IMG/VR virus record: IMGVR_UViG_3300042308_001511
Coordinates: 280,084-344,083 of that record
Strand: one strand, 5' to 3'
DNA length: 64,000 nt
Part shown: positions 5,479 through 63,439 of the stretch, in pieces
Layout of the letters: each line of letters starts with the position of its first letter
How positions within the stretch are numbered: the stretch's first letter is position 1
Notes under the pieces: generated by a model
Told to the model about the DNA's origin: nothing
Databases searched by the model: none
What the model saw: only the letters and a program-made list of their open reading frames with translations
Made by a program: the position numbers and the translations under genes

Positions 5479-5684
5479 TTACATTCCCAATTCCTTAAGT
5501 TTATCTTCTCTGAGCTCTTCTACGGTTCTGAAGTTTTTCCGATCCAGATAAGACCATCTATCACTATCATTTTTGACTAAAATCAAATCCGGAGACATTC
5601 CATAGTCGTTTGCATCGTACCACTTGCCGACGTGACTGACAGGCGTTCTAATATTGATTGATTACTTACACAAATGACCTTCAT
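5479..5684 (-). pseudogene. frameshifted family-B small protein with C-tag
   Basis: MKVICVSNQSILERLSVT in one frame continues as VGKWYDAND...REDKLKELGM* in another; 206 nt, one base short. Confidence 0.75.
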
Positions 5685-5706
5685 ACTATTGTTATTCTCA
5701 TAGGAA

Positions 5707-5738
5707 CAAATATAGCGATTAAAAAGAAAGGTGCCAAA
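5707..5738 (-). promoter_or_regulatory. Bacteroidota-type housekeeping promoter (-33 TTTG, 20 nt, -7 TATATTTG)
   Basis: Minus strand TTTG-gcacctttctttttaatcgc-TATATTTG, 23 nt before ATG 5684. Confidence 0.75.
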
Positions 5739-5782
5739 AAATACGAGTTTTTTGGCAACTCATCATACTGGGTTCCGGTAAA

Positions 5783-5791
5783 TAATATATA
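5783..5791 (+). promoter_or_regulatory. putative late promoter TAATATATA
   Basis: 5 nt before ATG 5797. Confidence 0.65.
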
Positions 5792-5796
5792 CCCTT

Positions 5797-6441
5797 ATGA
5801 GACTACTGAAGACATTCGAGGGATTCCACCTGGACGAGACAACACAGTTGATAACACACCTCTGCGAGGAACTGGGAGTTGACATAACATCCAGTGAAGA
5901 GATTGAGAGTGCGACAATATACACAACCGACTATTCTGAGTTGTCCGAACTAGAGATTGCTACGATACTAGAAGACCACATACCTATGCTGGGTGAGGGT
6001 AAAAGGATCGCGATGGCAATCGACCGGCTTAAGCCGATGAGGATATTCGTCTACGAGGGTAACCTGATTGATGTGATATTCTCCTACCTAGACTCAAGGC
6101 TCGGTGACATGGAGGTTGAGACCAACAAGAACAGGTGGGGTGAAGACACAATCGTGTACACAAAGGGTGGTTCGTGGTACTTCTGGCACTTCAAAGACGA
6201 CAGTGAGCTGAAGATATCCTACCAGAACGAGAACATACTCAACGAGATTGGATTGAAGAGCAAGCTAATAATGCCCAAAGTGGATCTCGAAGGGTTCATC
6301 GATTACATATCTGGGAACCACTACGAGCGGGGTGAGAAGATTACCGCGAACATATCGGCGGGATCCGTGAAACGTATGAACGTGGTGCATGAGTGGTTCT
6401 CCTCCAGGTTCGAGAAGTTCGACTACGTGGACTTCGTATAA
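5797..6441 (+). CDS. acidic hypothetical protein with N-tag (MRLLKTFEGF)
   Basis: 214-aa ORF; N-terminal motif plus late box. Confidence 0.8.
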   Translation: MRLLKTFEGFHLDETTQLITHLCEELGVDITSSEEIESATIYTTDYSELSELEIATILEDHIPMLGEGKRIAMAIDRLKPMRIFVYEGNLIDVIFSYLDSRLGDMEVETNKNRWGEDTIVYTKGGSWYFWHFKDDSELKISYQNENILNEIGLKSKLIMPKVDLEGFIDYISGNHYERGEKITANISAGSVKRMNVVHEWFSSRFEKFDYVDFV

Positions 6442-6444
6442 GTT

Positions 6445-6699
6445 TTATAGACCAAGTTCCTTTAGCTTCATCTCGCGCCACTCTTCCTTTGAGACGAATC
6501 TCGACCTTAGATACTCGGTGTTGTGACCGAAGTTGTTGATGATCTCGACGAACTCGTCGAACAGGTTTTCTGCATAGTTTACTACCTCGTACTCCTTTCC
6601 GTAGGTCAAGCCCCCAGGGATATGGCCTCTGGATTTGTATCCTCTTTTTGTTGATTCGTTGTTGTCGTAAGGTTCTATACAGACGATTTTTTCACACAT
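6445..6699 (-). CDS. family-B small protein with C-tag
   Basis: VCI...LTYGKEYEV...REMKLKELGL. Confidence 0.85.
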   Translation of the reverse strand: MCEKIVCIEPYDNNESTKRGYKSRGHIPGGLTYGKEYEVVNYAENLFDEFVEIINNFGHNTEYLRSRFVSKEEWREMKLKELGL

Positions 6700-6726
6700 G
6701 CCGTAAATATACGATAAAGTATTAAA

Positions 6727-6753
6727 GAAAAAAGCACCTAAGGTGCCTTTTTT
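6727..6753. terminator. intrinsic terminator
   Basis: AAAAAAGCACC-TAA-GGTGCCTTTTT at end of 6753..7295. Confidence 0.65.
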
Positions 6754-8436: not shown

Positions 8437-8642
8437 CTATGAAGTGATTCAACCGTTATACTTCCATCTTCATGCTTGGTGAACTTATCTCCTTTCGACG
8501 GTAGGTGCATTTTACCGTTGGCTAATCGTATGAATGATCCTACGGTATCACAACCATCTCTTTCTTCTCTTATGCAGTTCCCTTCGAAGAACTTCTGAGC
8601 TTCTCGCCCCATCCATCCTTCATATACTAATTCTTCTTTCAT
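8433..8642 (-). CDS. hypothetical protein
   Basis: MKEELVYEG..., ATGA overlaps at both ends. Confidence 0.75.
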   Translation of the reverse strand: MKEELVYEGWMGREAQKFFEGNCIREERDGCDTVGSFIRLANGKMHLPSKGDKFTKHEDGSITVESLHR

Positions 8643-8896
8643 CTTATTCCCAGTTCTTTTAGTTTGTCTTCTCTTAGTATTACAAGGTACTCGTCGATTG
8701 GGTACCACCAAGCAGAAGTGCCATTGTCTACGTTTTTATTTCCGAATTCTATTTTGAAGGTGCCATTATCGTGGTCTATTTCTACAATGGTTCCATCGAC
8801 GCCTATGAGGTTGTACATAGGTGTTGTCATCGCAACAAATAAGGCTCGCCTCTGTTCTGCGAATTCGAACCCTTTCACTCTGTCTCCTATCTTCAT
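8639..8896 (-). CDS. family-A small protein with C-tag
   Basis: MKIGDRVKGF...WYPIDEYL...REDKLKELGIR. Confidence 0.85.
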   Translation of the reverse strand: MKIGDRVKGFEFAEQRRALFVAMTTPMYNLIGVDGTIVEIDHDNGTFKIEFGNKNVDNGTSAWWYPIDEYLVILREDKLKELGIR

Positions 8897-9120
8897 ATTC
8901 CAAGTTGTTTCAGTTTCTCTTCTCTGTACTCGTCGGGCTCCAGGAATTGTAGGTGTCTGTTGTGAACGACCAGCTCGTACTCGGTCCCGTCGACGGTGAA
9001 GAAGACTAAGGTATAGTATTTGTTCGAGAATTCCGACTTGTAGAGACCACCACAGATGAGCGGCTCGTAACTGTAGTCCTTCAGCGTCGCGTCGTCCGAT
9101 ATGACCTTTACGTATTTCAT
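8893..9120 (-). CDS. family-B-like small protein with C-tag
   Basis: Ends REEKLKQLGI; ATGA coupling. Confidence 0.85.
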   Translation of the reverse strand: MKYVKVISDDATLKDYSYEPLICGGLYKSEFSNKYYTLVFFTVDGTEYELVVHNRHLQFLEPDEYREEKLKQLGI

Positions 9121-9347
9121 ATCCCTAGTTCTTTTAGTCTCCGTTCCCTTTGTATCGCCAGGTACTCCTTGATTGGGTAGGACCAGTAGCCGACTCCGTC
9201 GTAGAATATGCTGAATGTGTCGGTCCCCACGTCGCTTACGACGCCTTCTACACCCACGAAACGGTTCATACCTCTATTGTAGTTAAGGATTGCCGAGTTA
9301 TTGAATGCGGGGAATTTGAATCCTTTCGCTATGTCTCCTATCTTCAT
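9117..9347 (-). CDS. family-A small protein with C-tag
   Basis: AKGFKF...VGVEG...WSYPIKEYL...RERRLKELGI. Confidence 0.85.
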   Translation of the reverse strand: MKIGDIAKGFKFPAFNNSAILNYNRGMNRFVGVEGVVSDVGTDTFSIFYDGVGYWSYPIKEYLAIQRERRLKELGI

Positions 9348-9622
9348 ATCCCAAGTTCTTTAAGTTTTTCTTCTCTCTGCAATACCAGGTATTCGTCCAG
9401 AGGATAGATCCAGTGCTGCATGTTTGGTTCTGCTGGCATTACGCGAAATGTATCTACGTGTATGGGTGTACCGATAAAGCCTATGACCAGCTCGTTCATT
9501 TTCGGCCTGACCTGCCTCGCGATACCTTCCACGCCCACGAACTGTTCCATTAGGTCGTTCCAGTGAACCCCACTCGAGTTTTCGAACCGGAATCCTTTTG
9601 CCTTGTCTCCACGCTTAATCAT
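9344..9622 (-). CDS. family-A small protein with C-tag
   Basis: MIKRGDKAKGFRF...WIYPLDEYL...REEKLKELGI. Confidence 0.85.
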   Translation of the reverse strand: MIKRGDKAKGFRFENSSGVHWNDLMEQFVGVEGIARQVRPKMNELVIGFIGTPIHVDTFRVMPAEPNMQHWIYPLDEYLVLQREEKLKELGI

Positions 9623-9629
9623 CTTTCTA

Positions 9630-9875
9630 TCAAAAATGGTCTGGATCATAAAAGTCTCTATCTATGAATATAAGATCAGAGACCGGTATTGTTTTATAAC
9701 CATCATCGAATGTTTTATTGTTTAGAATAAATGCTGTGCCGAAGTCAAACGAATAATCTGAATTTTGAACGCAGCATATCTTATAGGTATTATCATTGTA
9801 ATTGTATGATACTTTGACAATATCACCTTCTAATACTTCTATGGCAGTGTCTTTGTATTTGAGCTTTATTTTCAT
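9630..9875 (-). CDS. hypothetical protein
   Basis: 81-aa ORF in array. Confidence 0.7.
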   Translation of the reverse strand: MKIKLKYKDTAIEVLEGDIVKVSYNYNDNTYKICCVQNSDYSFDFGTAFILNNKTFDDGYKTIPVSDLIFIDRDFYDPDHF

Positions 9876-9937
9876 GGCAGTTTATGTATTAAAATTTTAT
9901 TTGATCTCGACTTATCTCGCTCAGAGCAATGCCACAA

Positions 9938-10279
9938 TCATATTCCTATTTCTTTTAGTTTTTCTTCTCTATCTCTTCTTAATATCTCATTATCAAAAGG
10001 TATCCAATTTTCATCAAAGCTATACTTATAGATTTTCTTATTATCTTGCCAAATAAGATAAGAAGAAAACTTAACTACATTACCAAGATAGTCTACTCCT
10101 GTAAAAGCTTCTTTGTGTATGCTTTTTCCAAAACCCACTTTTTGAGTTTCTATATCCCTGATTATTTTTAATAAATCTTCAAAATCAATATCTCGCTCTA
10201 TAATTTCTTCGCCAGTAGTTGATATATACTCACCGGGCTTTAAAAACTTTATTTTAAGTATTTTCTCTATTTCCATCAT
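9938..10279 (-). CDS. hypothetical protein with C-tag
   Basis: Ends REEKLKEIGI. Confidence 0.85.
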   Translation of the reverse strand: MMEIEKILKIKFLKPGEYISTTGEEIIERDIDFEDLLKIIRDIETQKVGFGKSIHKEAFTGVDYLGNVVKFSSYLIWQDNKKIYKYSFDENWIPFDNEILRRDREEKLKEIGI

Positions 10280-10554
10280 ATCCCTAATTCTTTTATTCTT
10301 TCTTCTCTATACCATGACACCGGCATGAAGTAGGGATCGAACCAGGGTTCGATCCCAGGCGTGACCACAAGGTTCTCGTCGACCCACTGCTCTATCCAGT
10401 TACAGGTTAGACCATCGTCGGATTTGAGCTTGTAGATCCATTGTCCAAATGAGTCGAGCGCTCGGTCAGTTATCTCGTATGTCTTTCCCAGGACGAGGGT
10501 GTTATAGTTTTCCTCACCTTTCGTGCATATTACTCGTTCTCCTATTTCTAACAT
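10276..10554 (-). CDS. family-B small protein with C-tag
   Basis: VICT...LVLGKTYEI...REERIKELGI. Confidence 0.85.
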   Translation of the reverse strand: MLEIGERVICTKGEENYNTLVLGKTYEITDRALDSFGQWIYKLKSDDGLTCNWIEQWVDENLVVTPGIEPWFDPYFMPVSWYREERIKELGI

Positions 10555-10555
10555 A

Positions 10556-10849
10556 TTACCATTTCTTTCTAAGACCTTCTTTTATCTCTGGATGGTATTT
10601 GTCCACTAGGCGTTCGAACTGACCGTGGTGAAGCCCGTAGATAGGTATTCCACCCTCTCCGCAATAGATTTTTATTACGTGCCCGAACGCTATTACTAAC
10701 TTCGCATGCCTTACGATGTCTTCTGGGTCCGGTAGGCGAGCTCCTATGAAGAACCCGTCGTGGTCGTCTATCTGATCAGCAAGGTCTTTGGCCATAATTT
10801 CCAAAGTACCATACTTTACTTGTTTGAGTATGTCTGTTACTTCCATCAT
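10556..10849 (-). CDS. hypothetical protein
   Basis: 97-aa ORF in array. Confidence 0.75.
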   Translation of the reverse strand: MMEVTDILKQVKYGTLEIMAKDLADQIDDHDGFFIGARLPDPEDIVRHAKLVIAFGHVIKIYCGEGGIPIYGLHHGQFERLVDKYHPEIKEGLRKKW

Positions 10850-10850
10850 C

Positions 10851-11177
10851 CTATAAGTGTTTCTGTGTATATGGAATAATTTCTATTCCTATTGTAACTA
10901 AGGCAAACTGAATCATCTCGTCATCCATATTTAGTTCTCGTATATGATCCGGGTTTCTGACTACACGGTTGGCAGTCTGCAGAGCAGTAAGTTCAGGTGT
11001 GAATTTTTTTAGATCCGTTTTTATAGCGTTTATCTGATCGTTATTTAGTACCTGGACTATTTTGTATAGTTCGATAATACGCTCTCTGGTCGATTTTTCT
11101 TTGATGAGGTCTAATTTCCTTTTCAGGTTCTTGGTAGCCAGTCGTGTTATAAAGTCTTTTTTTCTCGTATCCGTCAT
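10851..11177 (-). CDS. hypothetical protein
   Basis: 108 aa; TATATTTG box at 11223-11230 upstream. Confidence 0.75.
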   Translation of the reverse strand: MTDTRKKDFITRLATKNLKRKLDLIKEKSTRERIIELYKIVQVLNNDQINAIKTDLKKFTPELTALQTANRVVRNPDHIRELNMDDEMIQFALVTIGIEIIPYTQKHL

Positions 11178-11222
11178 CGTCGTTCGTTTCTAGCATCGCG
11201 TGATACGCTCTGCGTTATACTA

Positions 11223-11230
11223 CAAATATA
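11223..11230 (-). promoter_or_regulatory. Bacteroidota-type -7 box TATATTTG
   Basis: Same TATATT[TC]G box at 14064, 18250, 22337, 27005, 28402, 29536, 31635, 35420, 36402, 41485, 46177, 49490, 63140, nearly all in intergenic gaps upstream of minus-strand ORFs. Confidence 0.7.
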
Positions 11231-11248
11231 GTAAAAACTTACGGGAAT

Positions 11249-11551
11249 TTATATGCCGAGTTCGTTTATTCTTTCATGTCTTGTAATCTCTATGTAGTCA
11301 GCGATTGGGTAGGTCCAATAATCATAATTTTGAAAATGAAGCAGATCAGACAAATTCCTGAGGTTCATGAACTTTACTACAAATGTCTCCTCCTTTACCT
11401 CAGCAACTTCACCCTCTTCACCAACGTAGAGATCCATGCTGGGGTGGTAGTTCAGCCCGGTCGTTTTGTCTATTGAAAAGGTGGTCTCAGATCCGTCACC
11501 TATTTTCTCTCCGAACTTGAACCCCTTTACTTTGTCTCCTACTTTTATCAT
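11249..11551 (-). CDS. family-A small protein with C-tag
   Basis: MIKVGDKVKGFKF...WTYPIADY...RHERINELGI. Confidence 0.85.
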   Translation of the reverse strand: MIKVGDKVKGFKFGEKIGDGSETTFSIDKTTGLNYHPSMDLYVGEEGEVAEVKEETFVVKFMNLRNLSDLLHFQNYDYWTYPIADYIEITRHERINELGI

Positions 11552-11552
11552 A

Positions 11553-12314
11553 TCAATGTGGTACAATGATTGTCTTGCCCTCACCCTTCTTTACATGTTC
11601 TCTCTCGTTCAGTATCCTCTTTATAGCAGCGTTCCCAATACCTCTGTTCCTTTTCATTCCTGCCTTATACATCTTCAATAACCTCTCAGTCGATAACTTC
11701 TCTAGTCTTTTGTCCTCGGGTCTCTTATCCTTCTGTGCCAATGGCTTGGCTTTCTCTACCTTTCTTTTGGAGAGCTTGGTCCCGCAAACGTATCTGTGCT
11801 CGTCGTCGCCTACCCTGACCGACCATAGCTGGTAGCCTTTATCCTCGTTTTGGTGCTTGAAGGTGATTGTGGCGTGGTGTCCATTATAGTAGACTGGCTC
11901 ACCTACGGTGAATGAGTTGGCCCACTCCATTTTTACCTGACGGATCTCTTCTTTGAAGTTAATCCCAGGTGGAACCATAATGTTTCGCCAGGTCGTTGTC
12001 TTACCTGAACGTAGCTCTTCCAGGCGTTTTTGCTGCTCGTCCGAGTATATGATACTCTCGATGTCGAAGGTCTCTTCCAGGTCTTCCCCTTTGTTGTCCA
12101 GCAGGTCTTCTATGAGTGAGTTCCTAATCTCGGCTTTGATGTCGAGGTGGTCGATGTGTATGTAGTCAACCAGGAATGAAGGTTCGTGGTTATACATTGA
12201 TATCTTTATGTAGTGTGCGATGTGTGTGCCCTCGTGCCTCTCTAAACTGAGAAGCTTGTGGAATCCGGATACCCTGCTTCGGACTAAGTCCTCTATTCTC
12301 TTACTGTGTTCCAT
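11553..12314 (-). CDS. multi-module hypothetical protein with internal tag-like helix
   Basis: 253 aa; internal IRNSLIEDLLD. Confidence 0.8.
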   Translation of the reverse strand: MEHSKRIEDLVRSRVSGFHKLLSLERHEGTHIAHYIKISMYNHEPSFLVDYIHIDHLDIKAEIRNSLIEDLLDNKGEDLEETFDIESIIYSDEQQKRLEELRSGKTTTWRNIMVPPGINFKEEIRQVKMEWANSFTVGEPVYYNGHHATITFKHQNEDKGYQLWSVRVGDDEHRYVCGTKLSKRKVEKAKPLAQKDKRPEDKRLEKLSTERLLKMYKAGMKRNRGIGNAAIKRILNEREHVKKGEGKTIIVPH

Positions 12315-13055: not shown

Positions 13056-13370
13056 TCAAATCCCAATCTCCGATAGTCTACAATCTCTTAGAAGCTCTTT
13101 GAATACCAATATATCGACTTCCAATGTATTGTCAAAGCAAATATCATCGGGCATGCTTTGGAGCTTATTGTCTTTATATACGAAATAGCATTTGTTAGGA
13201 TCTAAAAGAATCGATTCTGTAATCTCTCTTATGGCTCTTTCTTCAGATACTCGCCATTTATTGAATGATCCTTTTTCATAGTCCCACTGATAGTCGACCC
13301 AGCGAATGAATCTTTTTCCAAGGCGTTCTCTCTTTTCGCTTTTGATGGCGTTTAAAAGGCTCTCACTCAT
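13056..13370 (-). CDS. hypothetical protein with C-tag
   Basis: Ends RDCRLSEIGI, convergent with + gene. Confidence 0.8.
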   Translation of the reverse strand: MSESLLNAIKSEKRERLGKRFIRWVDYQWDYEKGSFNKWRVSEERAIREITESILLDPNKCYFVYKDNKLQSMPDDICFDNTLEVDILVFKELLRDCRLSEIGI

Positions 13371-13921
13371 ATCCCAAGACTTGATATTTTATCGTCTCTC
13401 TTTCCCTCTACGTCCAGGTACCCTTCTTTTTTCATTAGCCTTTCTACGAATTCTCGTTTTCTCTTACGTTCTTCTTTTTCTGCTATCTCGTCTTTGTATC
13501 TGGTATCAAGGTATTTCTTTATGGTCTCCATTAAGCTGTATTTGTCTAGGTCGAATTTGCCTATTTCTTTACAGGAGAAGATACCTTGTTTCACCAATAG
13601 TCCTTCTAACTCGTCTTCGTCGATGATTAGTTCAAACTCTCCCATAGTAGAGTGGTACAGTCTCTTTCTCTTTTGAAATGAAATCATAAAGAAAGCGGTG
13701 AAGATTATTCTTCCACTATCCTCAAAGAGTTTGTTTGTGACTCCACCTAAAAAGAGCATCATAACGGTTATTAGGATTCCTATAATAGACATTCCTATAA
13801 CTGCACCAATAGTGACTTCGAATTTGGTTTCTTGTGCCATAGCGTATATAAGGCCTATGGCAGGAGCTGTTACGAATGCTATTCCAATTAGTGTGAATAT
13901 TAATCTTTTTAAGTGTCTCAT
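13367..13921 (-). CDS. membrane protein with C-tag, paralog of 58198..58743
   Basis: TM helices; RKRLYHSTMGEF vs RKKTYHSKLGWF; ends RDDKISSLGI. Confidence 0.85.
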   Translation of the reverse strand: MRHLKRLIFTLIGIAFVTAPAIGLIYAMAQETKFEVTIGAVIGMSIIGILITVMMLFLGGVTNKLFEDSGRIIFTAFFMISFQKRKRLYHSTMGEFELIIDEDELEGLLVKQGIFSCKEIGKFDLDKYSLMETIKKYLDTRYKDEIAEKEERKRKREFVERLMKKEGYLDVEGKRDDKISSLGI

Positions 13922-14084
13922 TCTGTCTTATAATTAAAAAATAACAAAAATACATATGGATAAAGTTCCTGATCCATGTACCACTGAGGGAACTTTTAGT
14001 TTGTTCGGTTTCATTTCATGGTCATCCATATGTATTGTGTATTCAGTACAATGTTTTACAATACAAATATAGTGTTTTTATTTA

Positions 14085-14576: not shown

Positions 14577-14788
14577 ATCCCAATCTCTTTTAGTTGCAGC
14601 TCTCGCCATTCTTCTGGCGTCCAGAACCAGGTTCCTATGAAATCAACGCCTTTGGCTATTTTGAGTCCATAGAACCATTTCTTTTGGTCTTTCTCTCGTA
14701 TAATCATAATGGCGTTTTGTACATAAACACCTTCATATACTTCACCTTTTCTGAAACCATTGTGAGTATGTTTACATATTAGTTTCAT
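14573..14788 (-). CDS. family-B small protein with C-tag
   Basis: MKLICK...GEVYEG...RELQLKEIGI. Confidence 0.8.
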   Translation of the reverse strand: MKLICKHTHNGFRKGEVYEGVYVQNAIMIIREKDQKKWFYGLKIAKGVDFIGTWFWTPEEWRELQLKEIGI

Positions 14789-20116: not shown

Positions 20117-20117
20117 A

Positions 20118-20839: not shown

Positions 20840-20862
20840 AGGTACAATATACGGAAAATAAT

Positions 20863-47830: not shown

Positions 47831-47843
47831 ATTCCAATCTCTT

Positions 47844-48641: not shown

Positions 48642-48642
48642 A

Positions 48643-53182: not shown

Positions 53183-54853
53183 ATGAAAAGATTAATGACG
53201 CGTCAACAATTCTTAAACGAAGCACACATTTACTTCGACGATTACCTGGTAGACACGCTGAGTGAGATAGACAACACGATAGCAAAGAGGCTTCTCGACC
53301 TACACAAGAAACAGCAAGACACGGATATCGCTTTCGCGATGCAGGGCAAGAAAGGTAAAGTCAATATAATAACTTATAAAAAAGCAGCAGAGACGCTACG
53401 TAAGAAGGAGGACGACGTTTTCATAAACGATGTGGCAGATGACGTAGAGGCAGACAAGCCACTCGACGACGACTGGCAGATAAAGTCTTTTAACTTCCTT
53501 AGAGACAATAAAGCAATGACCGCGACCAAAATATCGAGGCTTGTAAACACCCTCTTCCCTAAGGAGTACGAAGACACAGAAGGACAAAAGACACTAAGAG
53601 ACCTGATAGACAAATATGGTGCACTTACCGACGACACAATGAAGTTTGAGGTCGTGAAGGGTGAGGAGGTAAAGAAGTGGTATCTTGAAGACAACTACGA
53701 GACAACAAAGGGAGACCTCGGTGGAAGTTGTATGAGACACGACCGATGTCAGACCTACTTCGACATATACATCAAGAATCCGGACGTGGTCAGCATACTA
53801 ATTTGTCTCGGTGCGAAAGGAACGTTGATAGGAAGAGCACTCATCTGGAACCTGTCGGACAGCAATGATCCGTCGCAGCTGATGGACAGGATTTACTTCA
53901 GAGACGAGAGGGTCAAAGAAAAGTTCATAAGCTACGCAGAGGATAACGATATGGCCTACAAACCCGGAAGGGGTCTGACCAATATCGTCTGGCGTGGAGA
54001 GAGATTCAAAAAATCACCGAAGGTAAAACTCGAAGAGTGGGAGTTCGACGAATATCCGTATATGGACACATTCGCGAAGCTCGACATCGAGGACGGTACA
54101 CTATACAACTCAGAAGACAAGGCCGACGGCTTCTACATACTCACATCCACAGACGGTGGATACCACGAGAGAGAGATTGTCTGGTCAACCTACGAAGACC
54201 AGGAGATAGACGAAGAAGAGGCGGTGTGGAGCGAGCCAATACAGGATTGGGTAAGCAGGGAAAATTCCGTATACGTCAGCACGGACTACGACAGAACAAC
54301 AGGCGATTACCCTAAGGACCACCCGGACATCGTACACATACCGAACGAAGGATATTTTCATATCGACGATACACTATGGAGTGAGTGCATGGAACAAGCG
54401 ATACTCTACTCCGACGCGATAGAAATAGTAGGTCACATCGACGATATGGAGGCAGACTCGTTTGGACACGAGATTGACTATGTCGATAGATCGAAAAAAC
54501 TCGTAATCTGGCGGGATATGCTCTGTGCGAACTGGCTGAGGTACCTAATAGACAATGATATCTGGGACGAGAAGCCGTTCCTCGACGACGACGTGGTAAA
54601 GGTAGAGAACGGAAAGTACTACCTAGTCGACTGGTCAATCGTCGCTTACGAGACCGAGAAGGGGCAGCTTTCATTCAAGCATTGTCAGGTTCTCAACATT
54701 AACAACGATGGACTTAAAGAGGTTATGACTGACACGCCTAGTTACTACTGGAACTTGAAATCAGAGATAAAAAAAGAATTAATCTCGGCACTCAAAGGTA
54801 AAGATGATAAAGAGGTAGAGAAGATTGAGAAGTGGATACTAAATACCCAATAG
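53183..54853 (+). CDS. large acidic protein with N-tag-like start (MKRLMTRQQFLNE)
   Basis: 556 aa; GSCMRH...GRALIW...MDRIY core; TATATATA at 53170. Confidence 0.85.
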   Translation: MKRLMTRQQFLNEAHIYFDDYLVDTLSEIDNTIAKRLLDLHKKQQDTDIAFAMQGKKGKVNIITYKKAAETLRKKEDDVFINDVADDVEADKPLDDDWQIKSFNFLRDNKAMTATKISRLVNTLFPKEYEDTEGQKTLRDLIDKYGALTDDTMKFEVVKGEEVKKWYLEDNYETTKGDLGGSCMRHDRCQTYFDIYIKNPDVVSILICLGAKGTLIGRALIWNLSDSNDPSQLMDRIYFRDERVKEKFISYAEDNDMAYKPGRGLTNIVWRGERFKKSPKVKLEEWEFDEYPYMDTFAKLDIEDGTLYNSEDKADGFYILTSTDGGYHEREIVWSTYEDQEIDEEEAVWSEPIQDWVSRENSVYVSTDYDRTTGDYPKDHPDIVHIPNEGYFHIDDTLWSECMEQAILYSDAIEIVGHIDDMEADSFGHEIDYVDRSKKLVIWRDMLCANWLRYLIDNDIWDEKPFLDDDVVKVENGKYYLVDWSIVAYETEKGQLSFKHCQVLNINNDGLKEVMTDTPSYYWNLKSEIKKELISALKGKDDKEVEKIEKWILNTQ

Positions 54854-55174
54854 TTGATCTATTCTACTATTTCTTAATTCTATACGATTCTCTATAAATG
54901 AACTTAGGTTTGAACTCGAACATATTATACCACGTTCGTCGGTGAAGATGTACTTCCATTTATAGTTACCTTCTCGTTGGACTATGAAGACCACTATGGC
55001 ATCGTATATCACACCACATCGCATTGATATTATTTTACCATTTTTTTGGTTTACGTACATATTTTTTTTGACCATTATTCTGACCTGCTCTGCCTCAGTG
55101 TTCAGTGTCATGCTTCGATTCCAGTATTTCAGATCTGCAGTATGTTGCTTCTCTGGCCTTATTTTATACATCAT
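54839..55174 (-). CDS. small protein with C-tag
   Basis: Ends RNSRIDQLLGI. Confidence 0.75.
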   Translation of the reverse strand: MMYKIRPEKQHTADLKYWNRSMTLNTEAEQVRIMVKKNMYVNQKNGKIISMRCGVIYDAIVVFIVQREGNYKWKYIFTDERGIICSSSNLSSFIENRIELRNSRIDQLLGI

Positions 55175-55428
55175 TTAAGTATTTCGTTAAGTTTGTCTTC
55201 TCTTCTTTCCCAGTCCTCTGTTTTGTTGGTGTACATCCAATCCCCTGCTATGATCACCTCTTTTCTTTTACAACAAATGCACCTTCTTATTTCCCGTTCA
55301 AAGGGTTGATCTATGTGATTTGTTCTCCACCTCGTAATGTATTTTGGAAAAGTGGATCTCAGTGTTATATTTGCTTTGTAATGTTCCCATATATGGAAAC
55401 CGAACTTACATTTTATTTTCTGTATCAT
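55171..55428 (-). CDS. small Cys/His protein with C-tag variant
   Basis: CKFGFHIW...RRCICC; ends REDKLNEILK. Confidence 0.8.
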   Translation of the reverse strand: MIQKIKCKFGFHIWEHYKANITLRSTFPKYITRWRTNHIDQPFEREIRRCICCKRKEVIIAGDWMYTNKTEDWERREDKLNEILK

Positions 55429-55799
55429 TTAAGTACTTTTTCGAGTGCCTCATCTCTAAGCTCGGCCTTTATGTATGATAGTGTCGCGTCGAGACCAATC
55501 TCTTTACGCATATCCATATACCTTTTGAATTCCCTTATGTTCACACAGTTGATTGTGAACTCCCTCTCGTAGTCGTTCCGATATGTGGTCATCCATATTT
55601 TTGCGGCGCTGGGTATGAAGTGGTTTTGGCAGAGTATCATATAAAACTCTCCCGAGAATTTTCGTAACATGTCCGTTATCTGTCGCATGTCGTGCACCCT
55701 CCATATTTGTGGATGTGGGAGTATTGGATTCTGCCCACCGAATGTCATTGCGACAATCAGATTCCTATTCCGTCTAATGCGTTTTGTCTTTTCCATCAC
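55425..55799 (-). CDS. hypothetical protein with C-tag variant
   Basis: Ends RDEALEKVLK. Confidence 0.8.
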   Translation of the reverse strand: MMEKTKRIRRNRNLIVAMTFGGQNPILPHPQIWRVHDMRQITDMLRKFSGEFYMILCQNHFIPSAAKIWMTTYRNDYEREFTINCVNIREFKRYMDMRKEIGLDATLSYIKAELRDEALEKVLK

Positions 55800-56119
55800 T
55801 CAATACCGAGATTGATTAATCTTTCCTCTCTTAGGTACTTTTCCCAATCCTTGAACTCGTTAATCATCGTAGTGAGACCTCTTCGATATCCCTCCATTTC
55901 GAGTGCGTTCAGTGTGAAACCGTTCTCTTTGTAGTCGTCAATCGTTTGGTTCGCAGACTCGAGTTCTCGATTTAGTTCGTGCATCACTGCTTCGTAGTGT
56001 TTCTTATAACGGAGTTCCTCGTTGTCGTTCAGTTTTTCATTGACCATTGACTCGACCATCTGATTGAGTTTCTTTGCAATTATTCTTATCTCTTCTTGCT
56101 CTATGTTTATTTTTTCCAT
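55796..56119 (-). CDS. coiled-coil protein with C-tag
   Basis: Ends REERLINLGIE. Confidence 0.8.
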   Translation of the reverse strand: MEKINIEQEEIRIIAKKLNQMVESMVNEKLNDNEELRYKKHYEAVMHELNRELESANQTIDDYKENGFTLNALEMEGYRRGLTTMINEFKDWEKYLREERLINLGIE

Positions 56120-56238
56120 CGTAATTTATTTTTCTATTTGATTATTGTACAAAAATAATAAAACGATTTTATTATTTGCCATATATAAGTTAGTGCGAGA
56201 ATTATATTTTCGCTAATTTTATATTATAATTATTTTGT

Positions 56239-57105
56239 ATGCGAGTTATATGTGTAAAAATAGGGTCTCTTTCTGAGTTTGAGACGTTCCTTCTTGCCGA
56301 AAATTTGGGATTGGATTACTTATCTATGAATGAGATAAGAAGAGATAAGACTGTTAGGAAATATTGGTTTGACCTGAATGGTGGAAGACTTTTGGCAGTA
56401 GAAAGGGTTATACTGGGTGAAAAAGAGTTTGACCCTATGATGCCTTTAGATTCATTACAATTAGATTCAATTCGTAAAAGTAAGCCTGTTCAGGCAGGTG
56501 AACCAACTAGGAAGTTTAAAGGTGACATAGAAGAGAAGAGGAAAGATTTTCAGCGATTGTTGGAAGAGGAAAGGAAATACAAAGAGGATATGTTGAACCG
56601 TAAGGACTATAATCCTGGTAACATAGTTTGTATAAATTCTAAATCTACATTGGATCAGGTTTTCGCGGTTTGTGTTGTAAATGATGTGGATCCAGTTACG
56701 ACAATTTCTTTTATATACGGTAATAGTCACTTAGATATGACACGTGTTTGGTTTGAAAAAATAACCGGTGTTTTGGTTGCATATAGTTACTACGAATATG
56801 GTAGAGATAACTTTGTTATGGTTGATTGTTTGATACCTAAAAAAGCGATATATCAGATGAGTCACACTCCTGTTAATGTACCGAAATTGAAGGTTTCTGA
56901 TGTTGCAATAGATGCGTATGGTAAGTTGAAAGAGTTAGGAATAGACTTAGGTATACAAAAGTTAGAGAACGTCGTTCTGGTTCAAAAGAACAGAGAGTTT
57001 TTGGAAAAATTACAGAGTGAACTTGCAGATGCAATCGATACTGAAGATTATGAGAAGGCTGCAGTTCTTAGAGATAGAATAAATGCACTAAAGGATAGAG
57101 ATTAA
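56239..57105 (+). CDS. protein with C-terminal UVR (UvrB/UvrC) motif
   Basis: LEKLQSELADAIDTEDYEKAAVLRDRINAL. Confidence 0.75.
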   Translation: MRVICVKIGSLSEFETFLLAENLGLDYLSMNEIRRDKTVRKYWFDLNGGRLLAVERVILGEKEFDPMMPLDSLQLDSIRKSKPVQAGEPTRKFKGDIEEKRKDFQRLLEEERKYKEDMLNRKDYNPGNIVCINSKSTLDQVFAVCVVNDVDPVTTISFIYGNSHLDMTRVWFEKITGVLVAYSYYEYGRDNFVMVDCLIPKKAIYQMSHTPVNVPKLKVSDVAIDAYGKLKELGIDLGIQKLENVVLVQKNREFLEKLQSELADAIDTEDYEKAAVLRDRINALKDRD

Positions 57106-57404
57106 ATTCCTAAATCTCTTAGTTTTTTTTCTCTCTTCATTGCTGATATAAGTGAATTTGGTTGTATACTGAGTACCTTATCTACTACGAAATCAGAGAT
57201 TGTTAATTTATATTTCGTCTCTACTTCAATAATAGCGCCTATTACATCCAGTTCATCCATATCCATATCGTAGAAAGTATTTGCGTTCGGATCCCACTTT
57301 ATACTACAAAGGTTCTCACATATTTCGTCAAATGGTATTTGCATATCACATATAACAGATATAAGAGTTTCTAAGTTTGTAATAAGTTTCTTTGAGTCCA
57401 TCAC
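57102..57404 (-). CDS. acyl-carrier-protein-like, Ser replaced by Glu, with C-tag
   Basis: DMDMDELDVIGAIIEVETKYKLTISD aligns to ACP DSLDxVELxMxxEExFxxxIxD; ends REKKLRDLGI. Confidence 0.65.
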   Translation of the reverse strand: MMDSKKLITNLETLISVICDMQIPFDEICENLCSIKWDPNANTFYDMDMDELDVIGAIIEVETKYKLTISDFVVDKVLSIQPNSLISAMKREKKLRDLGI

Positions 57405-57409
57405 ATTTG

Positions 57410-57712
57410 TTATTTTAATATTTCACCGAGTATAGATTCTCTTAATTCTTCTTTTGTGTAGAACGGAAATGTGTAGTTGGTGTCATCAAATTCGAAAGTC
57501 CAGGTTGCATCGCCTCCACTATCATCTTTTATTCTTATACTACGATTGGATTTGAATATTATAATGTATTGTTTTCCTTTTGTTAGTAATCGATTTTCAT
57601 CTTTTTCATCTGGAACCCATTTTCCGTTTTCTGAATATTTAAGTTGATACGCATCTCTTTTTGCCACACATTTACCACCGGTAACGAACTCGTCTTTTTG
57701 TTCTTGTGTCAT
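57410..57712 (-). CDS. family-B protein with C-tag variant
   Basis: KCVA...LTKGKQY...RESILGEILK. Confidence 0.8.
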   Translation of the reverse strand: MTQEQKDEFVTGGKCVAKRDAYQLKYSENGKWVPDEKDENRLLTKGKQYIIIFKSNRSIRIKDDSGGDATWTFEFDDTNYTFPFYTKEELRESILGEILK

Positions 57713-57960
57713 ATTCTTTTAATTTTGTAACTTCCACATATTGTCCTGGATTGTCCATTTTCGTCTGTGAAGTCAACACATTCTCCGGTTATGACAGGAT
57801 CTGTTGTGAGGTGGTACTCACCATTGTGTATTATTTGCCAGTTTTGTTTGTCACTTGGTTTTGAAATTTTTATAATCATTGCGATTACTAATATCGTCGA
57901 TGATATAATTATCAACAATGTCGTTTTTTTATCTACACCAAAAATATTTTCAATATTCAT
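57709..57960 (-). CDS. single-TM membrane protein
   Basis: N-terminal hydrophobic helix. Confidence 0.75.
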   Translation of the reverse strand: MNIENIFGVDKKTTLLIIISSTILVIAMIIKISKPSDKQNWQIIHNGEYHLTTDPVITGECVDFTDENGQSRTICGSYKIKRI

Positions 57961-58167
57961 TTAGTTTAATTTTTTTATCATCTCGTCCGCCATCTTAGCT
58001 GCGATGTCCGCTACTTTGTCGAGGTTGTGCTCGCTCTGTATGTTCATAGTCTTTATAAGACTGGACATTGCTTCTATTGCAATTTTGTCTCTGATACTCA
58101 TTTCGTTTGCTGGTGCATTACTAAATGCTTTCAGTCTTTCTCTGTTGTTATATTCAATTGGATCCAT
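57961..58167 (-). CDS. small hypothetical protein
   Basis: MSIRDKIAIEAM...A.KMADEMI pattern, 68 aa. Confidence 0.7.
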   Translation of the reverse strand: MDPIEYNNRERLKAFSNAPANEMSIRDKIAIEAMSSLIKTMNIQSEHNLDKVADIAAKMADEMIKKLN

Positions 58168-58197
58168 ATTGATTTTTTTTTAATTTTTATATTTTTT

Positions 58198-58743
58198 TTA
58201 GATACCAAGTTCGTTTATCTTTTTATCTCGTCTGGTCTCTGTGTCGAGGAAGCCGTCCCACTTCTTCATCTTTGCAATCAGTTCGTCCTGTTTCTCGCGT
58301 TCGTGTTTTTCGTTGAGTACGCTTTTGTACTCACGATCTAACATTTCCTTTATGGTATTGGGTACGTCGTAGTTGTCTAATGAAATCTCACCGATTTCGA
58401 GGCAATGAAAAAATCCTTGTTTGTAGACGAATATTTTATTAGCAGAGCGAAATATGTAAAGGTCGAACCAGCCGAGTTTCGAGTGGTAAGTCTTCTTTCT
58501 CTGTCGTGTAAACATCCACCAGAACATAGGAAATATCTTTCCGGTGTATTTTCCTTCTTCGACCATCTTTTCAAACAGAAAGAAAATTGCGGTCTGAACA
58601 ACAATTGTCACTAAGATTATAAGTACTAGAGCTATATTTCCGAGTATTCCTTCGAAATTAGATTTGTGTAAAATGGTTATTGGTATTATTGCGTTCGCCA
58701 AAATACCTAATAATATGTAAACTATCTTCTTAATTATCTCCAT
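58198..58743 (-). CDS. membrane protein with C-tag, paralog of 13367..13921
   Basis: TM helices; ends RDKKINELGI. Confidence 0.85.
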   Translation of the reverse strand: MEIIKKIVYILLGILANAIIPITILHKSNFEGILGNIALVLIILVTIVVQTAIFFLFEKMVEEGKYTGKIFPMFWWMFTRQRKKTYHSKLGWFDLYIFRSANKIFVYKQGFFHCLEIGEISLDNYDVPNTIKEMLDREYKSVLNEKHEREKQDELIAKMKKWDGFLDTETRRDKKINELGI

Positions 58744-58987
58744 CTTCTAATAAATTTTCTATTCTACTATTTCGCCATTCGTCGATATCCATAAAGTTCT
58801 TACTAAATACACTAAGTTTACCAGTGTCGGTGTCAGTGGTTGGATAAAAAATTACCATTTCATCGTCGTGGTATTCTTTGGTATATGCGAGTTCGAAAAC
58901 TTCTCCTTTATGGTAGGCATGATGTGTCCCGTTATACCAGACTTTATGTAGTGTTTCGGGTCCGTCGTTTATGGCTATTACTTTCAT
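58730..58987 (-). CDS. family-B-like protein with C-tag variant
   Basis: MKVIAIN...RNSRIENLLEDGDN. Confidence 0.8.
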   Translation of the reverse strand: MKVIAINDGPETLHKVWYNGTHHAYHKGEVFELAYTKEYHDDEMVIFYPTTDTDTGKLSVFSKNFMDIDEWRNSRIENLLEDGDN

Positions 58988-60860: not shown

Positions 60861-61772
60861 TTATTCATAAGCACTTGATGTAGTATCGTATTCAATCACG
60901 AATCTGAATTTGAGGTCAGGTATATTACCATAATTTGCGTAAGAAAGTGGCCACATTTGAAATGATATGTAAGATGTATAATACTTTTCAACTGGTGTAT
61001 TTTGTGGTATTCTCCAACTTCCACTATATGGATATGGAACGGTTCCAAGAGACTTATTACCAATGAGTGTACCTTCTAATTTATAAGTAGTAGAATCCAA
61101 ACTAACTTCTTCCGAGAATGTTACCTTTTCTCCCCATATTGTTCCTGGATCTCCTATATTTGCCGATGTGTATATTGAACCTGCGGTGGCTGCTGTTCCT
61201 GCAACTATATTATTTAGTTGAAATTGCGTCAGAGGATTTAAAACATTTCCTGGACCATTTGTAATGAATTCACCAACATTTGATGTTGTTGGGTCCTGAT
61301 CCAAATCATAGTTTATATTATAGTAGTTGTATCCGCCCATACCTTGAATTCTTACTTGTGTATTGGATAAGTTTCCTTTATAAATTATGTTTGTGTATAC
61401 TTTTATTTTACGTATTGCAAACCATGGTGTTATTGGTCGAAATGCTATAATTGACCATTGGTCTGGGTTGTATCCACCTACTACGAAACCAGGAGTTTTT
61501 TGAATTGCTGGTAAGTTTTTACCATTGTAAAATAATGAGGTACTGTAATATCCTTTTATCACACCATAATTTTCTTGGTTAGCGGCAACGACTATAGGAT
61601 TGAATCCGGATCCTCCTGTTCCTGAATCTATTGATAGACTCATTACACCACTATCGTATTGACCATATGATGTTGGAATTGGCCAATCGGTTGTTGGGTT
61701 TTTGTGTGGTTTAATCCCTGATATAGGTTTACCCCAAAGATTGTACCATTTACTTCTGTCGATAGGTGGCAT
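60861..61772 (-). CDS. putative virion-associated protein sharing N-terminal peptide with 59087..60817
   Basis: IDRSKWYN[ML]WG..I.GIKP.KNP; G/T/N-rich; TAATATATA at 61821-61829 (-). Confidence 0.65.
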   Translation of the reverse strand: MPPIDRSKWYNLWGKPISGIKPHKNPTTDWPIPTSYGQYDSGVMSLSIDSGTGGSGFNPIVVAANQENYGVIKGYYSTSLFYNGKNLPAIQKTPGFVVGGYNPDQWSIIAFRPITPWFAIRKIKVYTNIIYKGNLSNTQVRIQGMGGYNYYNINYDLDQDPTTSNVGEFITNGPGNVLNPLTQFQLNNIVAGTAATAGSIYTSANIGDPGTIWGEKVTFSEEVSLDSTTYKLEGTLIGNKSLGTVPYPYSGSWRIPQNTPVEKYYTSYISFQMWPLSYANYGNIPDLKFRFVIEYDTTSSAYE

Positions 61773-61870
61773 ATTTTCATTTTGTTTTTTTTTATCGATA
61801 AAACGATAAGCTTTTTTTTCTATATATTAATTTATAGGTATGAATAATTTGTACTTCTGAGTTTCTGATA

Positions 61871-61878
61871 TATAAATA
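61871..61878 (+). promoter_or_regulatory. TATAAATA late-promoter-like box
   Basis: Identical to the T4 late promoter consensus, 15 nt before endolysin ATG. Confidence 0.6.
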
Positions 61879-61893
61879 AAATAATTTTGAGTT

Positions 61894-62616
61894 ATGATTT
61901 TGAAATTAGGATCAAAAGGTGATGACGTCAAAAGACTTCAGGAGAAGTTGGGACTTGGAATGGACGGCACTTTCGGTGTTGTTACTGAGAAAGCTGTAAA
62001 GGATTGGCAATCAAAGAACGGACTTGTTTCGGATGGTATTGTAGGAGATTCTACGTGGGGTAAATTGTTCGGTACTAATGTAGAGGTCGATGCTAATGCA
62101 CCATTAGCATTTATTAGCAAATTGAAAGGGCACATACCTGATGCAGTTTTTTCACAACTTCCTACAACGTGTGCTGCTTATAACATAATTACACCACTTA
62201 GACTTGCACACTTTATGGCACAATGTGCTCACGAATCTGGAAACTTTGTTTGGACAACAGAATTGGCAACTGGTAAGGCATATGAGGGTAGAAAAGATTT
62301 AGGTAATATACAACCGGGTGATGGTGTTAGGTTTAAGGGAAGAGGTTATATACAACTAACAGGAAGAGCCAATTATGAAAAGTTTTCTAAGTTCTGTGGT
62401 GAGGATTGTGTTACTAACCCAGAGTTAGTTGCAACTAAATACCCAATGTTATCTGCTGCTTACTTTTTTCAGAAGACTAAACTTTGGGACATTTGTGATC
62501 AAGGTTCTGATGAAACGGTTGTTACGAAGGTTTCTAAAAGGGTAAATGGTGGAACGAATGGATTAGAAGACAGGAAAAAGAAGTTCAAAAACTTCTGGTC
62601 TATATTATCAAAGTAA
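61894..62616 (+). CDS. endolysin: peptidoglycan-binding domain plus GH19 lysozyme
   Basis: LKLGSKGDDVKRLQ...DGIVGDST; RLAHFMAQCAHESG, FKGRGYIQLTGRANY, VNGGTNGLEDR. Confidence 0.9.
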   Translation: MILKLGSKGDDVKRLQEKLGLGMDGTFGVVTEKAVKDWQSKNGLVSDGIVGDSTWGKLFGTNVEVDANAPLAFISKLKGHIPDAVFSQLPTTCAAYNIITPLRLAHFMAQCAHESGNFVWTTELATGKAYEGRKDLGNIQPGDGVRFKGRGYIQLTGRANYEKFSKFCGEDCVTNPELVATKYPMLSAAYFFQKTKLWDICDQGSDETVVTKVSKRVNGGTNGLEDRKKKFKNFWSILSK

Positions 62617-62627
62617 TTATAATTGAT

Positions 62628-62831
62628 ATGAAAATAAAGTTATTTGAGAAATTCAATTCGAAAAAGAAGAAGACTTTCAATATAGAAGATTGTCCATCTT
62701 TCGGTGAGTTCAGTAAGTTATTGACTGATTTGAAAAAGTTGGCAGAAAAAGTTAGAAAAGAGATGCCACATGGTACTAAAAGTGATTTAGATGACTATAT
62801 TGAGAATAGAATTTTCGGTAGAGATGTATAA
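62628..62831 (+). CDS. small N-tag protein (MKIKLFEKF)
   Basis: Downstream of endolysin in same orientation. Confidence 0.75.
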   Translation: MKIKLFEKFNSKKKKTFNIEDCPSFGEFSKLLTDLKKLAEKVRKEMPHGTKSDLDDYIENRIFGRDV

Positions 62832-62832
62832 A

Positions 62833-63120
62833 TCAATTGAGTAGGTCGTCAATCTTTTTATCTCTATCGTGTTCTGTAAGTCTTCTCTGAATGGCGTCTA
62901 TTCCTTTTATGAAATTCATAACATAACCGGGTATGATGTGGTGTTTGTCTGATGTGAAATAATCTAACTTCTTACAATTAGCATATGGATACTTTTTACT
63001 AAGAGATTCGAATGTCGTTTCTTCGTCTAAGTCAAGTATCTCATAGCGTATACCCGTTCTGGCTAACTTACGTGATTCCTGTGCGTAGACCGCTATGTCA
63101 TTGAATTTAATGAAATACAT
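62833..63120 (-). CDS. small protein with C-tag variant
   Basis: Ends RDKKIDDLLN; -7 box at 63140. Confidence 0.8.
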   Translation of the reverse strand: MYFIKFNDIAVYAQESRKLARTGIRYEILDLDEETTFESLSKKYPYANCKKLDYFTSDKHHIIPGYVMNFIKGIDAIQRRLTEHDRDKKIDDLLN

Positions 63121-63151
63121 ATTTTTGTTGTGATTTCTACAAATATAAAAA

Positions 63152-63439
63152 TTAATAAAGACCTTTCAAAAGTTCGTCAATCTTCATTTCTCTGAAAATG
63201 TCCTTTTGTATCAGAAAACTTTTGTGTACTTTGTAACCATTCGGCCTACCACCTAAATCTTTACCTTCTTCCAATACCTCTACGCTATCACCCCATAGTC
63301 TTATAACGACGTAAGTAGTTCCGTCTATAAGTTGTCTGGGATAACCATTACCCTTCCTTCGGAATACAATCACCCGGTCACCAATCACGTAGGATATGCT
63401 ACCCGACATTATTGTGTCTTTTAATTTCCAAGTATCCAT
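63152..63439 (-). CDS. small SH3-like protein with C-tag variant
   Basis: YVIGDRV...REMKIDELLKGLY. Confidence 0.8.
   Translation of the reverse strand: MDTWKLKDTIMSGSISYVIGDRVIVFRRKGNGYPRQLIDGTTYVVIRLWGDSVEVLEEGKDLGGRPNGYKVHKSFLIQKDIFREMKIDELLKGLY

Follow-up and report, generated by a model that had tools for sequence, protein, structure and literature searches.

Why should dozens of phage proteins with unrelated bodies end in the same short peptide? The question is raised by a stretch of 64,000 nucleotides (nt) from IMG/VR virus record IMGVR_UViG_3300042308_001511 (positions 280,084 to 344,083), which is referred to below as the window. An earlier inspection of its letters and translations (the sequence-only reading) had pointed to 65–70 open reading frames (ORFs) with a common C-terminal motif of the REEKLKELGI type, and had proposed this as an address label for early proteins. 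The computational analysis described here shows that the motif, called the tag, is conserved as a peptide. It also suggests, tentatively, that the tag is a docking helix for one shared partner.

A shared peptide at the C-terminus of unrelated proteins

The window was searched in all six frames, independently of ORF calls, with the strict pattern [KR][DE]x[KR][LIVM]xx[LIVM][GL][ILVMDN], and 50 mononucleotide shuffles provided the null expectation. There were 40 matches, 39 of them on the minus strand, and 38 sit 0–1 residues ahead of a stop codon. The shuffled windows gave a mean of 0.28 matches and a maximum of 2, so the near-terminal motif is far more frequent than in shuffled sequence. A 10-column position matrix built from the strict matches was scored on the last 16 residues of each ORF of 25 amino acids (aa) or more, the gene models used here and for the genome LR745206 (below) being our own crude calls. 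Scores above 5 set 58 ORFs cleanly apart from the background, and about ten more ORFs carry degenerate variants (endings ILK, LLD or LLGI), giving 68 tagged ORFs in total. This agrees with the number first estimated by eye. The limits first given also hold, from a first carrier at 5479–5598 to a last at 63152–63439, as does the strand bias, every carrier lying on the minus strand except 52612–52935 (plus).

Beyond position 5400 the tagged ORFs make up 67 of the 117 minus-strand ORFs. By size, 33 of 45 ORFs of 60–100 aa and 24 of 34 of 100–150 aa are tagged, compared with none of the 13 of 210 aa or more. The motif stands at the C-terminus in 50 of its 53 occurrences in the window. Moreover, the carriers were correctly described as having unrelated bodies: with the last 14 residues cut off, the 68 bodies fall into 58 BLASTP clusters at E 1e-3, the largest of which is a six-member beta-barrel family.

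Anatomy of the tag

Residue frequencies were taken from 275 non-identical tagged ORFs of the window and its relatives:

Position 1: Arg, 99%
Position 2: Asp, Glu or Asn, 95%
Position 4: Lys or Arg, 93%
Position 5: Leu or Ile, 98%
Position 8: Leu or Ile, 95%
Position 9: Gly, 45%; Leu, 43%
Position 10: Ile if position 9 is Gly

Positions 3, 6 and 7 are variable, with any residue allowed at position 3. Upstream, Thr or Ser is preferred at −4 and Lys or an aliphatic residue at −3, with Glu favoured at −1 and a hydrophobic side chain at 0, so that the motif reaches back to an S/T-x-x-E helix N-cap. Judged from these preferences, the tag is predicted to be a self-capped amphipathic α-helix of about 15–17 residues, with an N-cap box at one end and a Gly-hydrophobic C-cap at the other. 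The AlphaFold2 (AF2) model of one carrier family, family A, has a mean predicted local distance difference test score (pLDDT) of 78 and comprises a small β-barrel and a helix at residues 84–98, followed by the last three residues. Foldseek returned for this fold weak KOW/SH3-like matches alone, with E above 0.05.

Two types of ending occur. In the window 42 of 60 tags end in Gly-Ile, and most of those in LR745206 end in Leu or Ile plus a polar residue, followed by 0–8 further polar residues. Orthologues switch between GI and LL[DN] endings, for example in a pair with 55% body identity; the two are thus equivalent, interchangeable forms of one motif. Between homologous pairs the tag is 60% identical, compared with 38% for the bodies. 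Likewise, in an alignment of 34 family A sequences the tag is the best-conserved block, while the bodies drop to about 40% identity. In sequence terms the tag qualifies as a short linear docking motif: it is shorter than 20 residues, is found on non-homologous proteins and is better conserved than its surroundings.

Conservation resides in the peptide

The conserved object is the peptide, maintained by purifying selection that acts on the protein. When 38 tags are aligned, the first and second codon positions carry up to 2.3 bits and the third positions 0.07–0.3 bits, and all synonymous codons are used, in line with the synonymous variation that the sequence-only reading had noticed. These 38 tags had been chosen as peptides, and three further tests independent of that choice were therefore made. 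The window is 83–97% identical in nucleotide sequence to a Joint Genome Institute (JGI) contig of 660,742 bp. Across the ten tag codons of 11 ungapped orthologous carriers in this relative, the proportion of synonymous differences (pS) is 0.21 in the tags and 0.13 in the bodies; synonymous sites in the tag are thus unprotected, and conservation at the peptide level is upheld.

The tag had also been reported to persist at convergent gene ends. Indeed, its mean score is 20.8 at such ends (10 genes) as against 17.6 where the start of the next gene overlaps, and 27.0 ahead of long gaps. The tag is therefore independent of gene coupling. Fifteen untagged genes likewise overlap their neighbour. Finally, relatives of 27–31% guanine-plus-cytosine (GC) content encode the same peptide with different codons, the window having about 38%.

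There is nevertheless a secondary signal at the level of the nucleotides. Half of the strict tags end in ATA-TGA with the next ATG overlapping, and for the same amino acids the tag uses A-ending codons more often than the bodies do; A occupies third positions at a frequency of 0.69 where a start codon overlaps and 0.49 otherwise. A-rich start regions that lack a Shine-Dalgarno sequence are typical of Bacteroidota. We read these A-rich third positions as a secondary overlay, in which the 3′ end of one gene doubles as the start region of the next.

Distribution of the tag in phages and cells

When 2.9 million IMG/VR contigs were scanned with a degenerate DNA pattern for the tag, 15 stretches matched. 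Three of these are the window itself, on its contig of 344,083 bp, and the others lie mostly on contigs of 77–483 kb with several tags on each; in one case 35 tagged ORFs are packed into 20.7 kb of a 172 kb contig. A second pattern, for tags ending in Ile-Leu-Asp/Asn, gave 111 stretches, and the motif stands at an ORF end in 61 of the 80 loci listed. Tagged low-GC viral contigs number in the dozens, an estimate of spread that depends on exact-pattern scans. A tblastn search with one carrier matched LR745206 (634,780 bp) and LR756502 (642,428 bp), two of the largest curated phage genomes, which belong to the Mahaphage clade and are predicted to replicate in Bacteroidetes (PMC7162821; PMC9723777).

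In a crude set of 972 genes of LR745206, a relaxed pattern is found 96 times within 8 residues of the C-terminus, compared with 0.6 in per-protein shuffles. Near the N-terminus there are 5 occurrences (1.2 expected) and at internal positions 23 (6.7 expected), so that 96 of 124 occurrences are C-terminal. The copies are spread genome-wide and follow the local gene orientation. On this count the tag appears to sit on about a tenth of all proteins in the related phages of 630–660 kb.

The label is, however, less strictly C-terminal than was first supposed. In LR745206 and the IMG/VR loci 0–8 mostly polar or acidic residues trail the motif, which consequently needs no terminal carboxylate, and conserved internal and N-terminal copies occur. 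A free C-terminus is not essential, because two non-terminal copies (in 28448–29170 and 42913–43515) are conserved across very distant genomes.

Four IMG/VR contigs of 82–476 kb (loci L058, L061, L068 and L083) share a conserved gene pair, encoding a protein of 246–249 aa and an overlapping one of 72–74 aa, both tagged. In Pfam the 246-aa protein matches the T4 major capsid family, though below threshold (E 0.012). It was considered as a capsid protein and set aside: its neighbours are unannotated, its two large neighbours are not paralogues and its AF2 model failed (pLDDT 34). When the conserved 253-aa protein at 11553–12314 was used as a query for relatives, three contigs were returned.

From cellular genomes the tag is essentially absent, as judged from the first of the two DNA patterns, which in 596 Gb of bacterial and archaeal sequence gave 14 isolated matches in unrelated taxa. 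Four of these are at ORF ends, among them a YgjP-like metallopeptidase and an enzyme-sized protein of 601 aa (locus L023). Pfam and PHROGs scans of all 68 carriers returned almost nothing and no informative family, and nothing informative was found in the same libraries for the 10 longest tagged proteins of LR745206 or for the conserved tagged IMG/VR proteins. A profile of 55 tails had no match in PDB (best E 0.7), nor any in Pfam up to E 10. A search of 1.84 billion representative proteins with this profile gave 11 significant matches, a low number explained by the shortness of the motif; in nine of them a small protein is matched at its very end. The literature was searched for the peptide strings and for C-terminal motifs common to many proteins of jumbo phages or megaphages, and nothing relevant emerged. 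The tag thus appears to be undescribed so far in Pfam, PDB or the searchable literature, as the sequence-only reading had presumed.

Several known motifs were considered and rejected. No carrier or tail matches the Pfam helicase-associated (HA) domain (PF03457; about 64 residues, three helices). Descent from the third HA helix had been hinted at by a match to a protein with seven HA domains, but hhalign aligned 13 columns only, at a probability of 51%, and the likeness is taken as a local resemblance. The first helix of SAP/Rho_N and the UVR motif look alike at first sight, but in them the spacing from Arg to the hydrophobic positions appears to differ by one residue. The double-glycine leader of C39 peptidases was rejected on the C-terminal position of the motif and its single Gly followed by Ile, or absence of Gly.

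A docking helix as the favoured reading

Six carriers are membrane proteins, built either as a hairpin of two transmembrane (TM) segments or as a single TM segment followed by a strongly basic stretch, and their tags are predicted to face the cytoplasm. Five proteins with signal-peptide or lipoprotein-like N-termini (starting at 1433, 22391, 23664, 31186 and 46216) are untagged, as are the recognisable enzymes and enzyme-like proteins, namely a C39 peptidase, a GNAT protein, two methyltransferases, a LOG-family protein and an endolysin-like protein. In microproteins of 34, 39 and 48 aa, one or two tags make up nearly the whole chain.

Our favoured reading, to which we would give somewhat less than an even chance, is that the tag is a docking helix recognised in trans by one shared partner in the cytoplasm of the infected cell. 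We infer recognition in trans because the charged positions vary no more than the hydrophobic ones, although the bodies have no detectable similarity to one another, and non-homologous folds cannot offer the Arg, the acidic residue and the Lys the same intramolecular contacts. A small protein that gained the helix would be recruited to, or regulated by, the same machine. The carriers form a large, fast-evolving set of small (mostly 60–150 aa) accessory proteins of Bacteroidota-associated megaphages, predicted to face the cytoplasm and bearing the tag at the C-terminus or within 8 residues of it. The putative partner is more likely to be phage-encoded or lineage-specific than a universally conserved host protein. 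It probably evolves with the phage, because the preferred ending drifts between lineages (the shares of GI and LL/IL endings differ) and orthologues switch form.

Several points weigh against the docking helix. At short distance the tag is no more constrained than the rest of the protein, pN/pS (the non-synonymous counterpart of pS divided by pS) being 0.28 in tags and 0.27 in bodies, a comparison that rests on about 27 substitutions in the tags. No tagged protein matches a family of known function in Pfam or PHROGs, and the partner is putative. Docking alone does not explain the preference for the C-terminus; entry into an unfoldase by threading, procapsid loading or past recombination at 3′ ends would be consistent with it too. 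Finally, the pattern K-L-x-E-L-G-hydrophobic recurs as an ordinary helix end in unrelated cellular proteins (the 601-aa protein of locus L023 and the third HA helix), so some of the motif may do no more than specify a stable end to a helix.

A broader version, possible but doubtful, has phages of the Mahaphage group practise peptide addressing on the scale of the proteome: the C-terminal helix would route roughly a tenth of the proteins to a phage-built destination, and an N-terminal motif (below) would stand for a different route. That destination might be a compartment or scaffold, or else the inside of the capsid, from which the proteins would be co-injected. The cargo would be fast-evolving small effectors, new ones being enrolled simply by acquiring the helix.

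Other readings of the conserved peptide

The helix might instead be a degron or adaptor site that hands accessory proteins to one AAA+ protease, whether FtsH, ClpXP, Lon or a phage enzyme. This would be a special case of docking with a defined outcome, the carriers being short-lived or cleared together. It suits an unfoldase that starts from an end, since the tag is near-terminal, predicted to be cytoplasmic and present on soluble and membrane proteins alike, and the microproteins made of little but tag could serve as competitors. There is precedent in the lambda CII, O, N and Xis proteins and in Mu proteins, which are controlled by host proteases, in some cases through C-terminal signals. Such a timer is nevertheless unlikely: the motif appears to need no free carboxylate and is trailed by polar or acidic residues in the relatives, its internal and N-terminal copies are conserved, and a charged helix is unlike the known C-terminal degrons of nonpolar character.

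Loading into the virion is a second possibility, and a distinctly unlikely one. Here the helix would bind the procapsid interior or a scaffold, and small proteins would enter the particle and accompany the DNA into the cell infected next. In P22 the basic residues of a C-terminal helix mediate binding of scaffold to coat, and a short C-terminal peptide on unrelated cargo is what such loading would look like. The capsids are huge, the tagged runs are contiguous and co-oriented with lectin-like genes of virion type, and the tagged 246-aa protein with its capsid-family hint occurs on several contigs. That hint is below threshold, however, and is accompanied by a failed model; moreover, about 10% of all genes would need to be packaged, six carriers are integral membrane proteins, and a distinct N-terminal motif on larger enzyme-like proteins would make a more plausible capsid-targeting signal. 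Within the window itself, no gene was recognisable as encoding a capsid protein.

Less probable still is that the tag acts without any receptor, as a very stable generic capped helix that stabilises or solubilises new small proteins in cis, or lets them self-associate. The N-cap and the Gly-hydrophobic C-cap are of textbook form, similar helix ends exist in unrelated cellular proteins, and AF2 places the helix beside the barrel with high confidence. Yet a generic cap needs neither an invariant Arg nor acidic and basic residues at set positions in 58 unrelated bodies and at GC contents of 27% to 38%, and it would be expected in other phages and cells, where the tag is essentially absent.

A nucleotide-level element (the initiation region of the next gene, a termination–reinitiation signal or a cassette recombination site, with the peptide as a by-product) would suit the ATA-TGA ends and the A-rich third positions, but as primary cause it is largely refuted, and hardly credible, given the nearly free third positions, the undiminished synonymous divergence, tag scores that do not fall at convergent ends or ahead of long gaps, the overlaps of untagged genes, just 2 of 40 strict matches away from any ORF end, and the other codons and extra residues ahead of the stop in relatives.

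Tagged runs and individual carriers

The docking reading concerns the following features of the window, where 'matrix' denotes assignment by the position matrix:

5479..6699, minus: two tagged genes, 39 aa and 84 aa, both convergent with a plus-strand gene; scores 26.7 and 25.5
8639..11584, minus: 7 tagged genes, including four of the small beta-barrel family A; scores 18.8–30.5
13056..14917, minus: 4 tagged genes, including a two-TM membrane protein (13367–13921) and a 174-aa protein; scores 20.0–25.2
17595..18274, minus: two tagged genes, one with a degenerate ending and one of family A; matrix
19859..22023, minus: 4 tagged genes, of which 19859–20116 ends convergently; matrix and gene context
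24134..26945, minus: 7 tagged genes, with weak variants in two; matrix
28619..28648, minus: internal motif copy in the 240-aa ORF 28448–29170, followed by a 56-residue extension
31667..32193, minus: two tagged genes; scores 25.1 and 18.6
34799..41179, minus: a looser run of 12 tagged genes, including membrane proteins 39106–39582 and 39794–40363; matrix
35741–36325, minus: double-tag ORF, with an internal copy at about 36032–36061 (residue 89) and a second copy at its end; matrix
43459..43488, minus: N-terminal tag-like motif at residues 10–19 of the untagged 200-aa ORF 42913–43515, at the same place in the LR745206 orthologue
43515..49483, minus: the densest run, 16 tagged genes, including the 34-aa microprotein 48071–48175; scores up to 31.4
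45012..45041, minus: weaker internal copy in the 248-aa ORF 44520–45266; motif search
52612..52935, plus: the sole plus-strand carrier; score 27.7
52932..53153, minus: tagged gene with an LLD ending, convergent with the plus-strand carrier; score 15.7
54839..58987, minus: 8 tagged genes, including the two-TM protein 58198–58743, with several LL/IL-type endings; matrix and topology
62833..63439, minus: two tagged genes with LL-type endings; scores 15.9 and 14.3

The 39-aa microprotein of the first run is 95% identical in the 660 kb relative. The 174-aa protein of the third is kept in both megaphages of more than 630 kb, LR745206 and LR756502, and 63152–63439 has an orthologue in LR745206. In the densest run the orthologues of low-GC relatives retain the tag, and the best-scoring tag of the window lies at 48975–49004. 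The motif and the extension of ORF 28448–29170 are both kept in its LR745206 orthologue at 34% identity. The second half of the double-tag ORF aligns to a separate tagged 109-aa gene of LR745206, which suggests a gene fusion. At 52903–52964 a plus-strand and a minus-strand tag stand tail to tail, their ORFs overlapping by 4 nt.

A second motif, host signals and neighbouring genes

A second shared motif lies at the N-terminus and reads Met, Lys/Arg, x, Ile/Leu, Lys, x, Phe/Tyr, Glu, x, Phe. Its carriers are larger proteins, several of them enzyme-like (P-loop NTPase, GNAT), and are often on the opposite strand:

4580–5461, plus: N-terminal motif gene
5797–6441, plus: N-terminal motif gene
12600–13055, plus: N-terminal motif gene
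16579–17289, minus: N-terminal motif gene
19224–19856, plus: N-terminal motif gene
32706–33215, minus: N-terminal motif gene
51667–52161, minus: N-terminal motif gene
52131–52580, minus: N-terminal motif gene
18562, 30945, 53183 and 62628: looser cases

None of the eight clear cases carries both motifs, as had been claimed. The N-terminal motif, which seems closer to the capsid targeting sequence of T4 than the C-terminal tag is, may stand for a route separate from that of the tag.

Host-type −7 boxes had been said to precede most tagged runs. The sequence TAnnTTTG does occur 4–45 nt upstream of about 8–10 run heads, but 'mostly preceded' overstated the case, 80 boxes being found against 60 expected. 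Nor is the description of the carriers as early proteins well supported: the promoters give weak evidence for it, and lectin-like genes of virion type at 49519–51663 directly adjoin tagged runs. Besides these boxes, several operon heads (those upstream of 31186–31617, 41179–41469 and 6445–6699, for example) have a TATATTCGTA-like or TATATTTAC-like sequence shortly before the start, which may be a phage-specific promoter variant. The T9SS (type IX secretion system) C-terminal sorting domain of a 429-aa protein (1433–2722) and the TAnnTTTG boxes before some operons fit a Bacteroidota host. Positions 1–5400 of the window have a GC content of 44–45%, as against about 38%, and no tags.

Other genes lie among or beside the tagged runs. 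A cysteine protease of the Peptidase_C39 family (15895–16578, minus) stands inside the tagged region and is kept in the 660 kb relative. ORFs 42913–43515 and 44520–45266 (both minus) are conserved in LR745206, and neither matches Pfam. The one that bears the N-terminal tag-like helix has a Gly-Ser ... Asp-x-Asp pattern suggestive of a nucleotidyltransferase, and the other, with the weak internal tag, a C-terminal DGYHR motif suggestive of a ParB-like domain. A LOG/SLOG-family protein (30221–30886, plus; Lysine_decarbox, E 8e-35) adjoins a DUF998-like membrane protein (29573–30202, plus), which is 45% identical to an LR745206 protein. Two paralogue pairs with shared N-termini occur among the tagged runs (49519–50226, 50242–51663, 59087–60817 and 60861–61772, all minus), one pair having a concanavalin-like lectin domain and matching a virion structural PHROG, and so does a leucine-rich-repeat protein (27086–28258, plus). 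No tRNA genes were found in the window.

Significance

Huge phages carry hundreds of orphan small genes, and the tag offers a simple sequence rule by which one functional class of them could be picked out in metagenomes. A single peptide would also be an experimental hook to the machine that manages the accessory proteins of megaphages. The model this suggests is one in which new phage genes are enrolled in an existing pathway through gain of a short terminal module. Were the partner a protease, a compartment or a capsid, the tag could become a portable targeting tool in Bacteroidota.

Comparison with known systems

By its sequence the tag fails the defining tests of the specific families with which it was compared, namely a nucleotide element, an ssrA-type degron, T4 targeting, the HA domain and the double-glycine leader. 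Likenesses in general design exist nonetheless. The capsid targeting sequence of T4, on the internal proteins and Alt, is also a terminal peptide of about 10 residues that leads unrelated phage proteins to one destination and one partner. It is N-terminal, however, is cut by the prohead protease and occurs on a handful of proteins, whereas the tag is C-terminal, sits on about 10% of the proteome and has no sign of cleavage. Encapsulin cargo peptides and the C-terminal helices of scaffolding proteins are, like the tag, short C-terminal peptides on unrelated proteins, in their case recognised by an HK97-fold shell. They are rich in Gly, Ser and Leu or form a helix-turn-helix, and are found on few enzymes or on the scaffold itself, whereas the tag includes membrane proteins among its carriers.

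The ssrA tag, the tail of lambda CII and the end of MuA show that a terminal peptide can set the fate of a cytoplasmic protein, and supply a phage precedent for unstable regulators. These signals are individual, mostly nonpolar or unstructured and dependent on a free end, unlike a charged, capped helix on scores of proteins that tolerates extensions and internal positions. In oomycete RxLR, Plasmodium PEXEL, the Legionella Dot/Icm C-terminal signal and the PRANC/F-box of poxvirus ankyrin proteins, a short motif marks a diversifying accessory repertoire and plugs it into one trafficking or host machine. They belong to other organisms and compartments and differ in sequence, and none of them is known from bacteriophages. 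Finally, the clamp-binding or PCNA-interacting protein (PIP) boxes and the C-terminal tip of SSB are found on replication and repair enzymes and have another consensus, whereas the carriers in the window are orphan small proteins; like the tag as it is read here, they are short terminal motifs that dock many different proteins on one hub.

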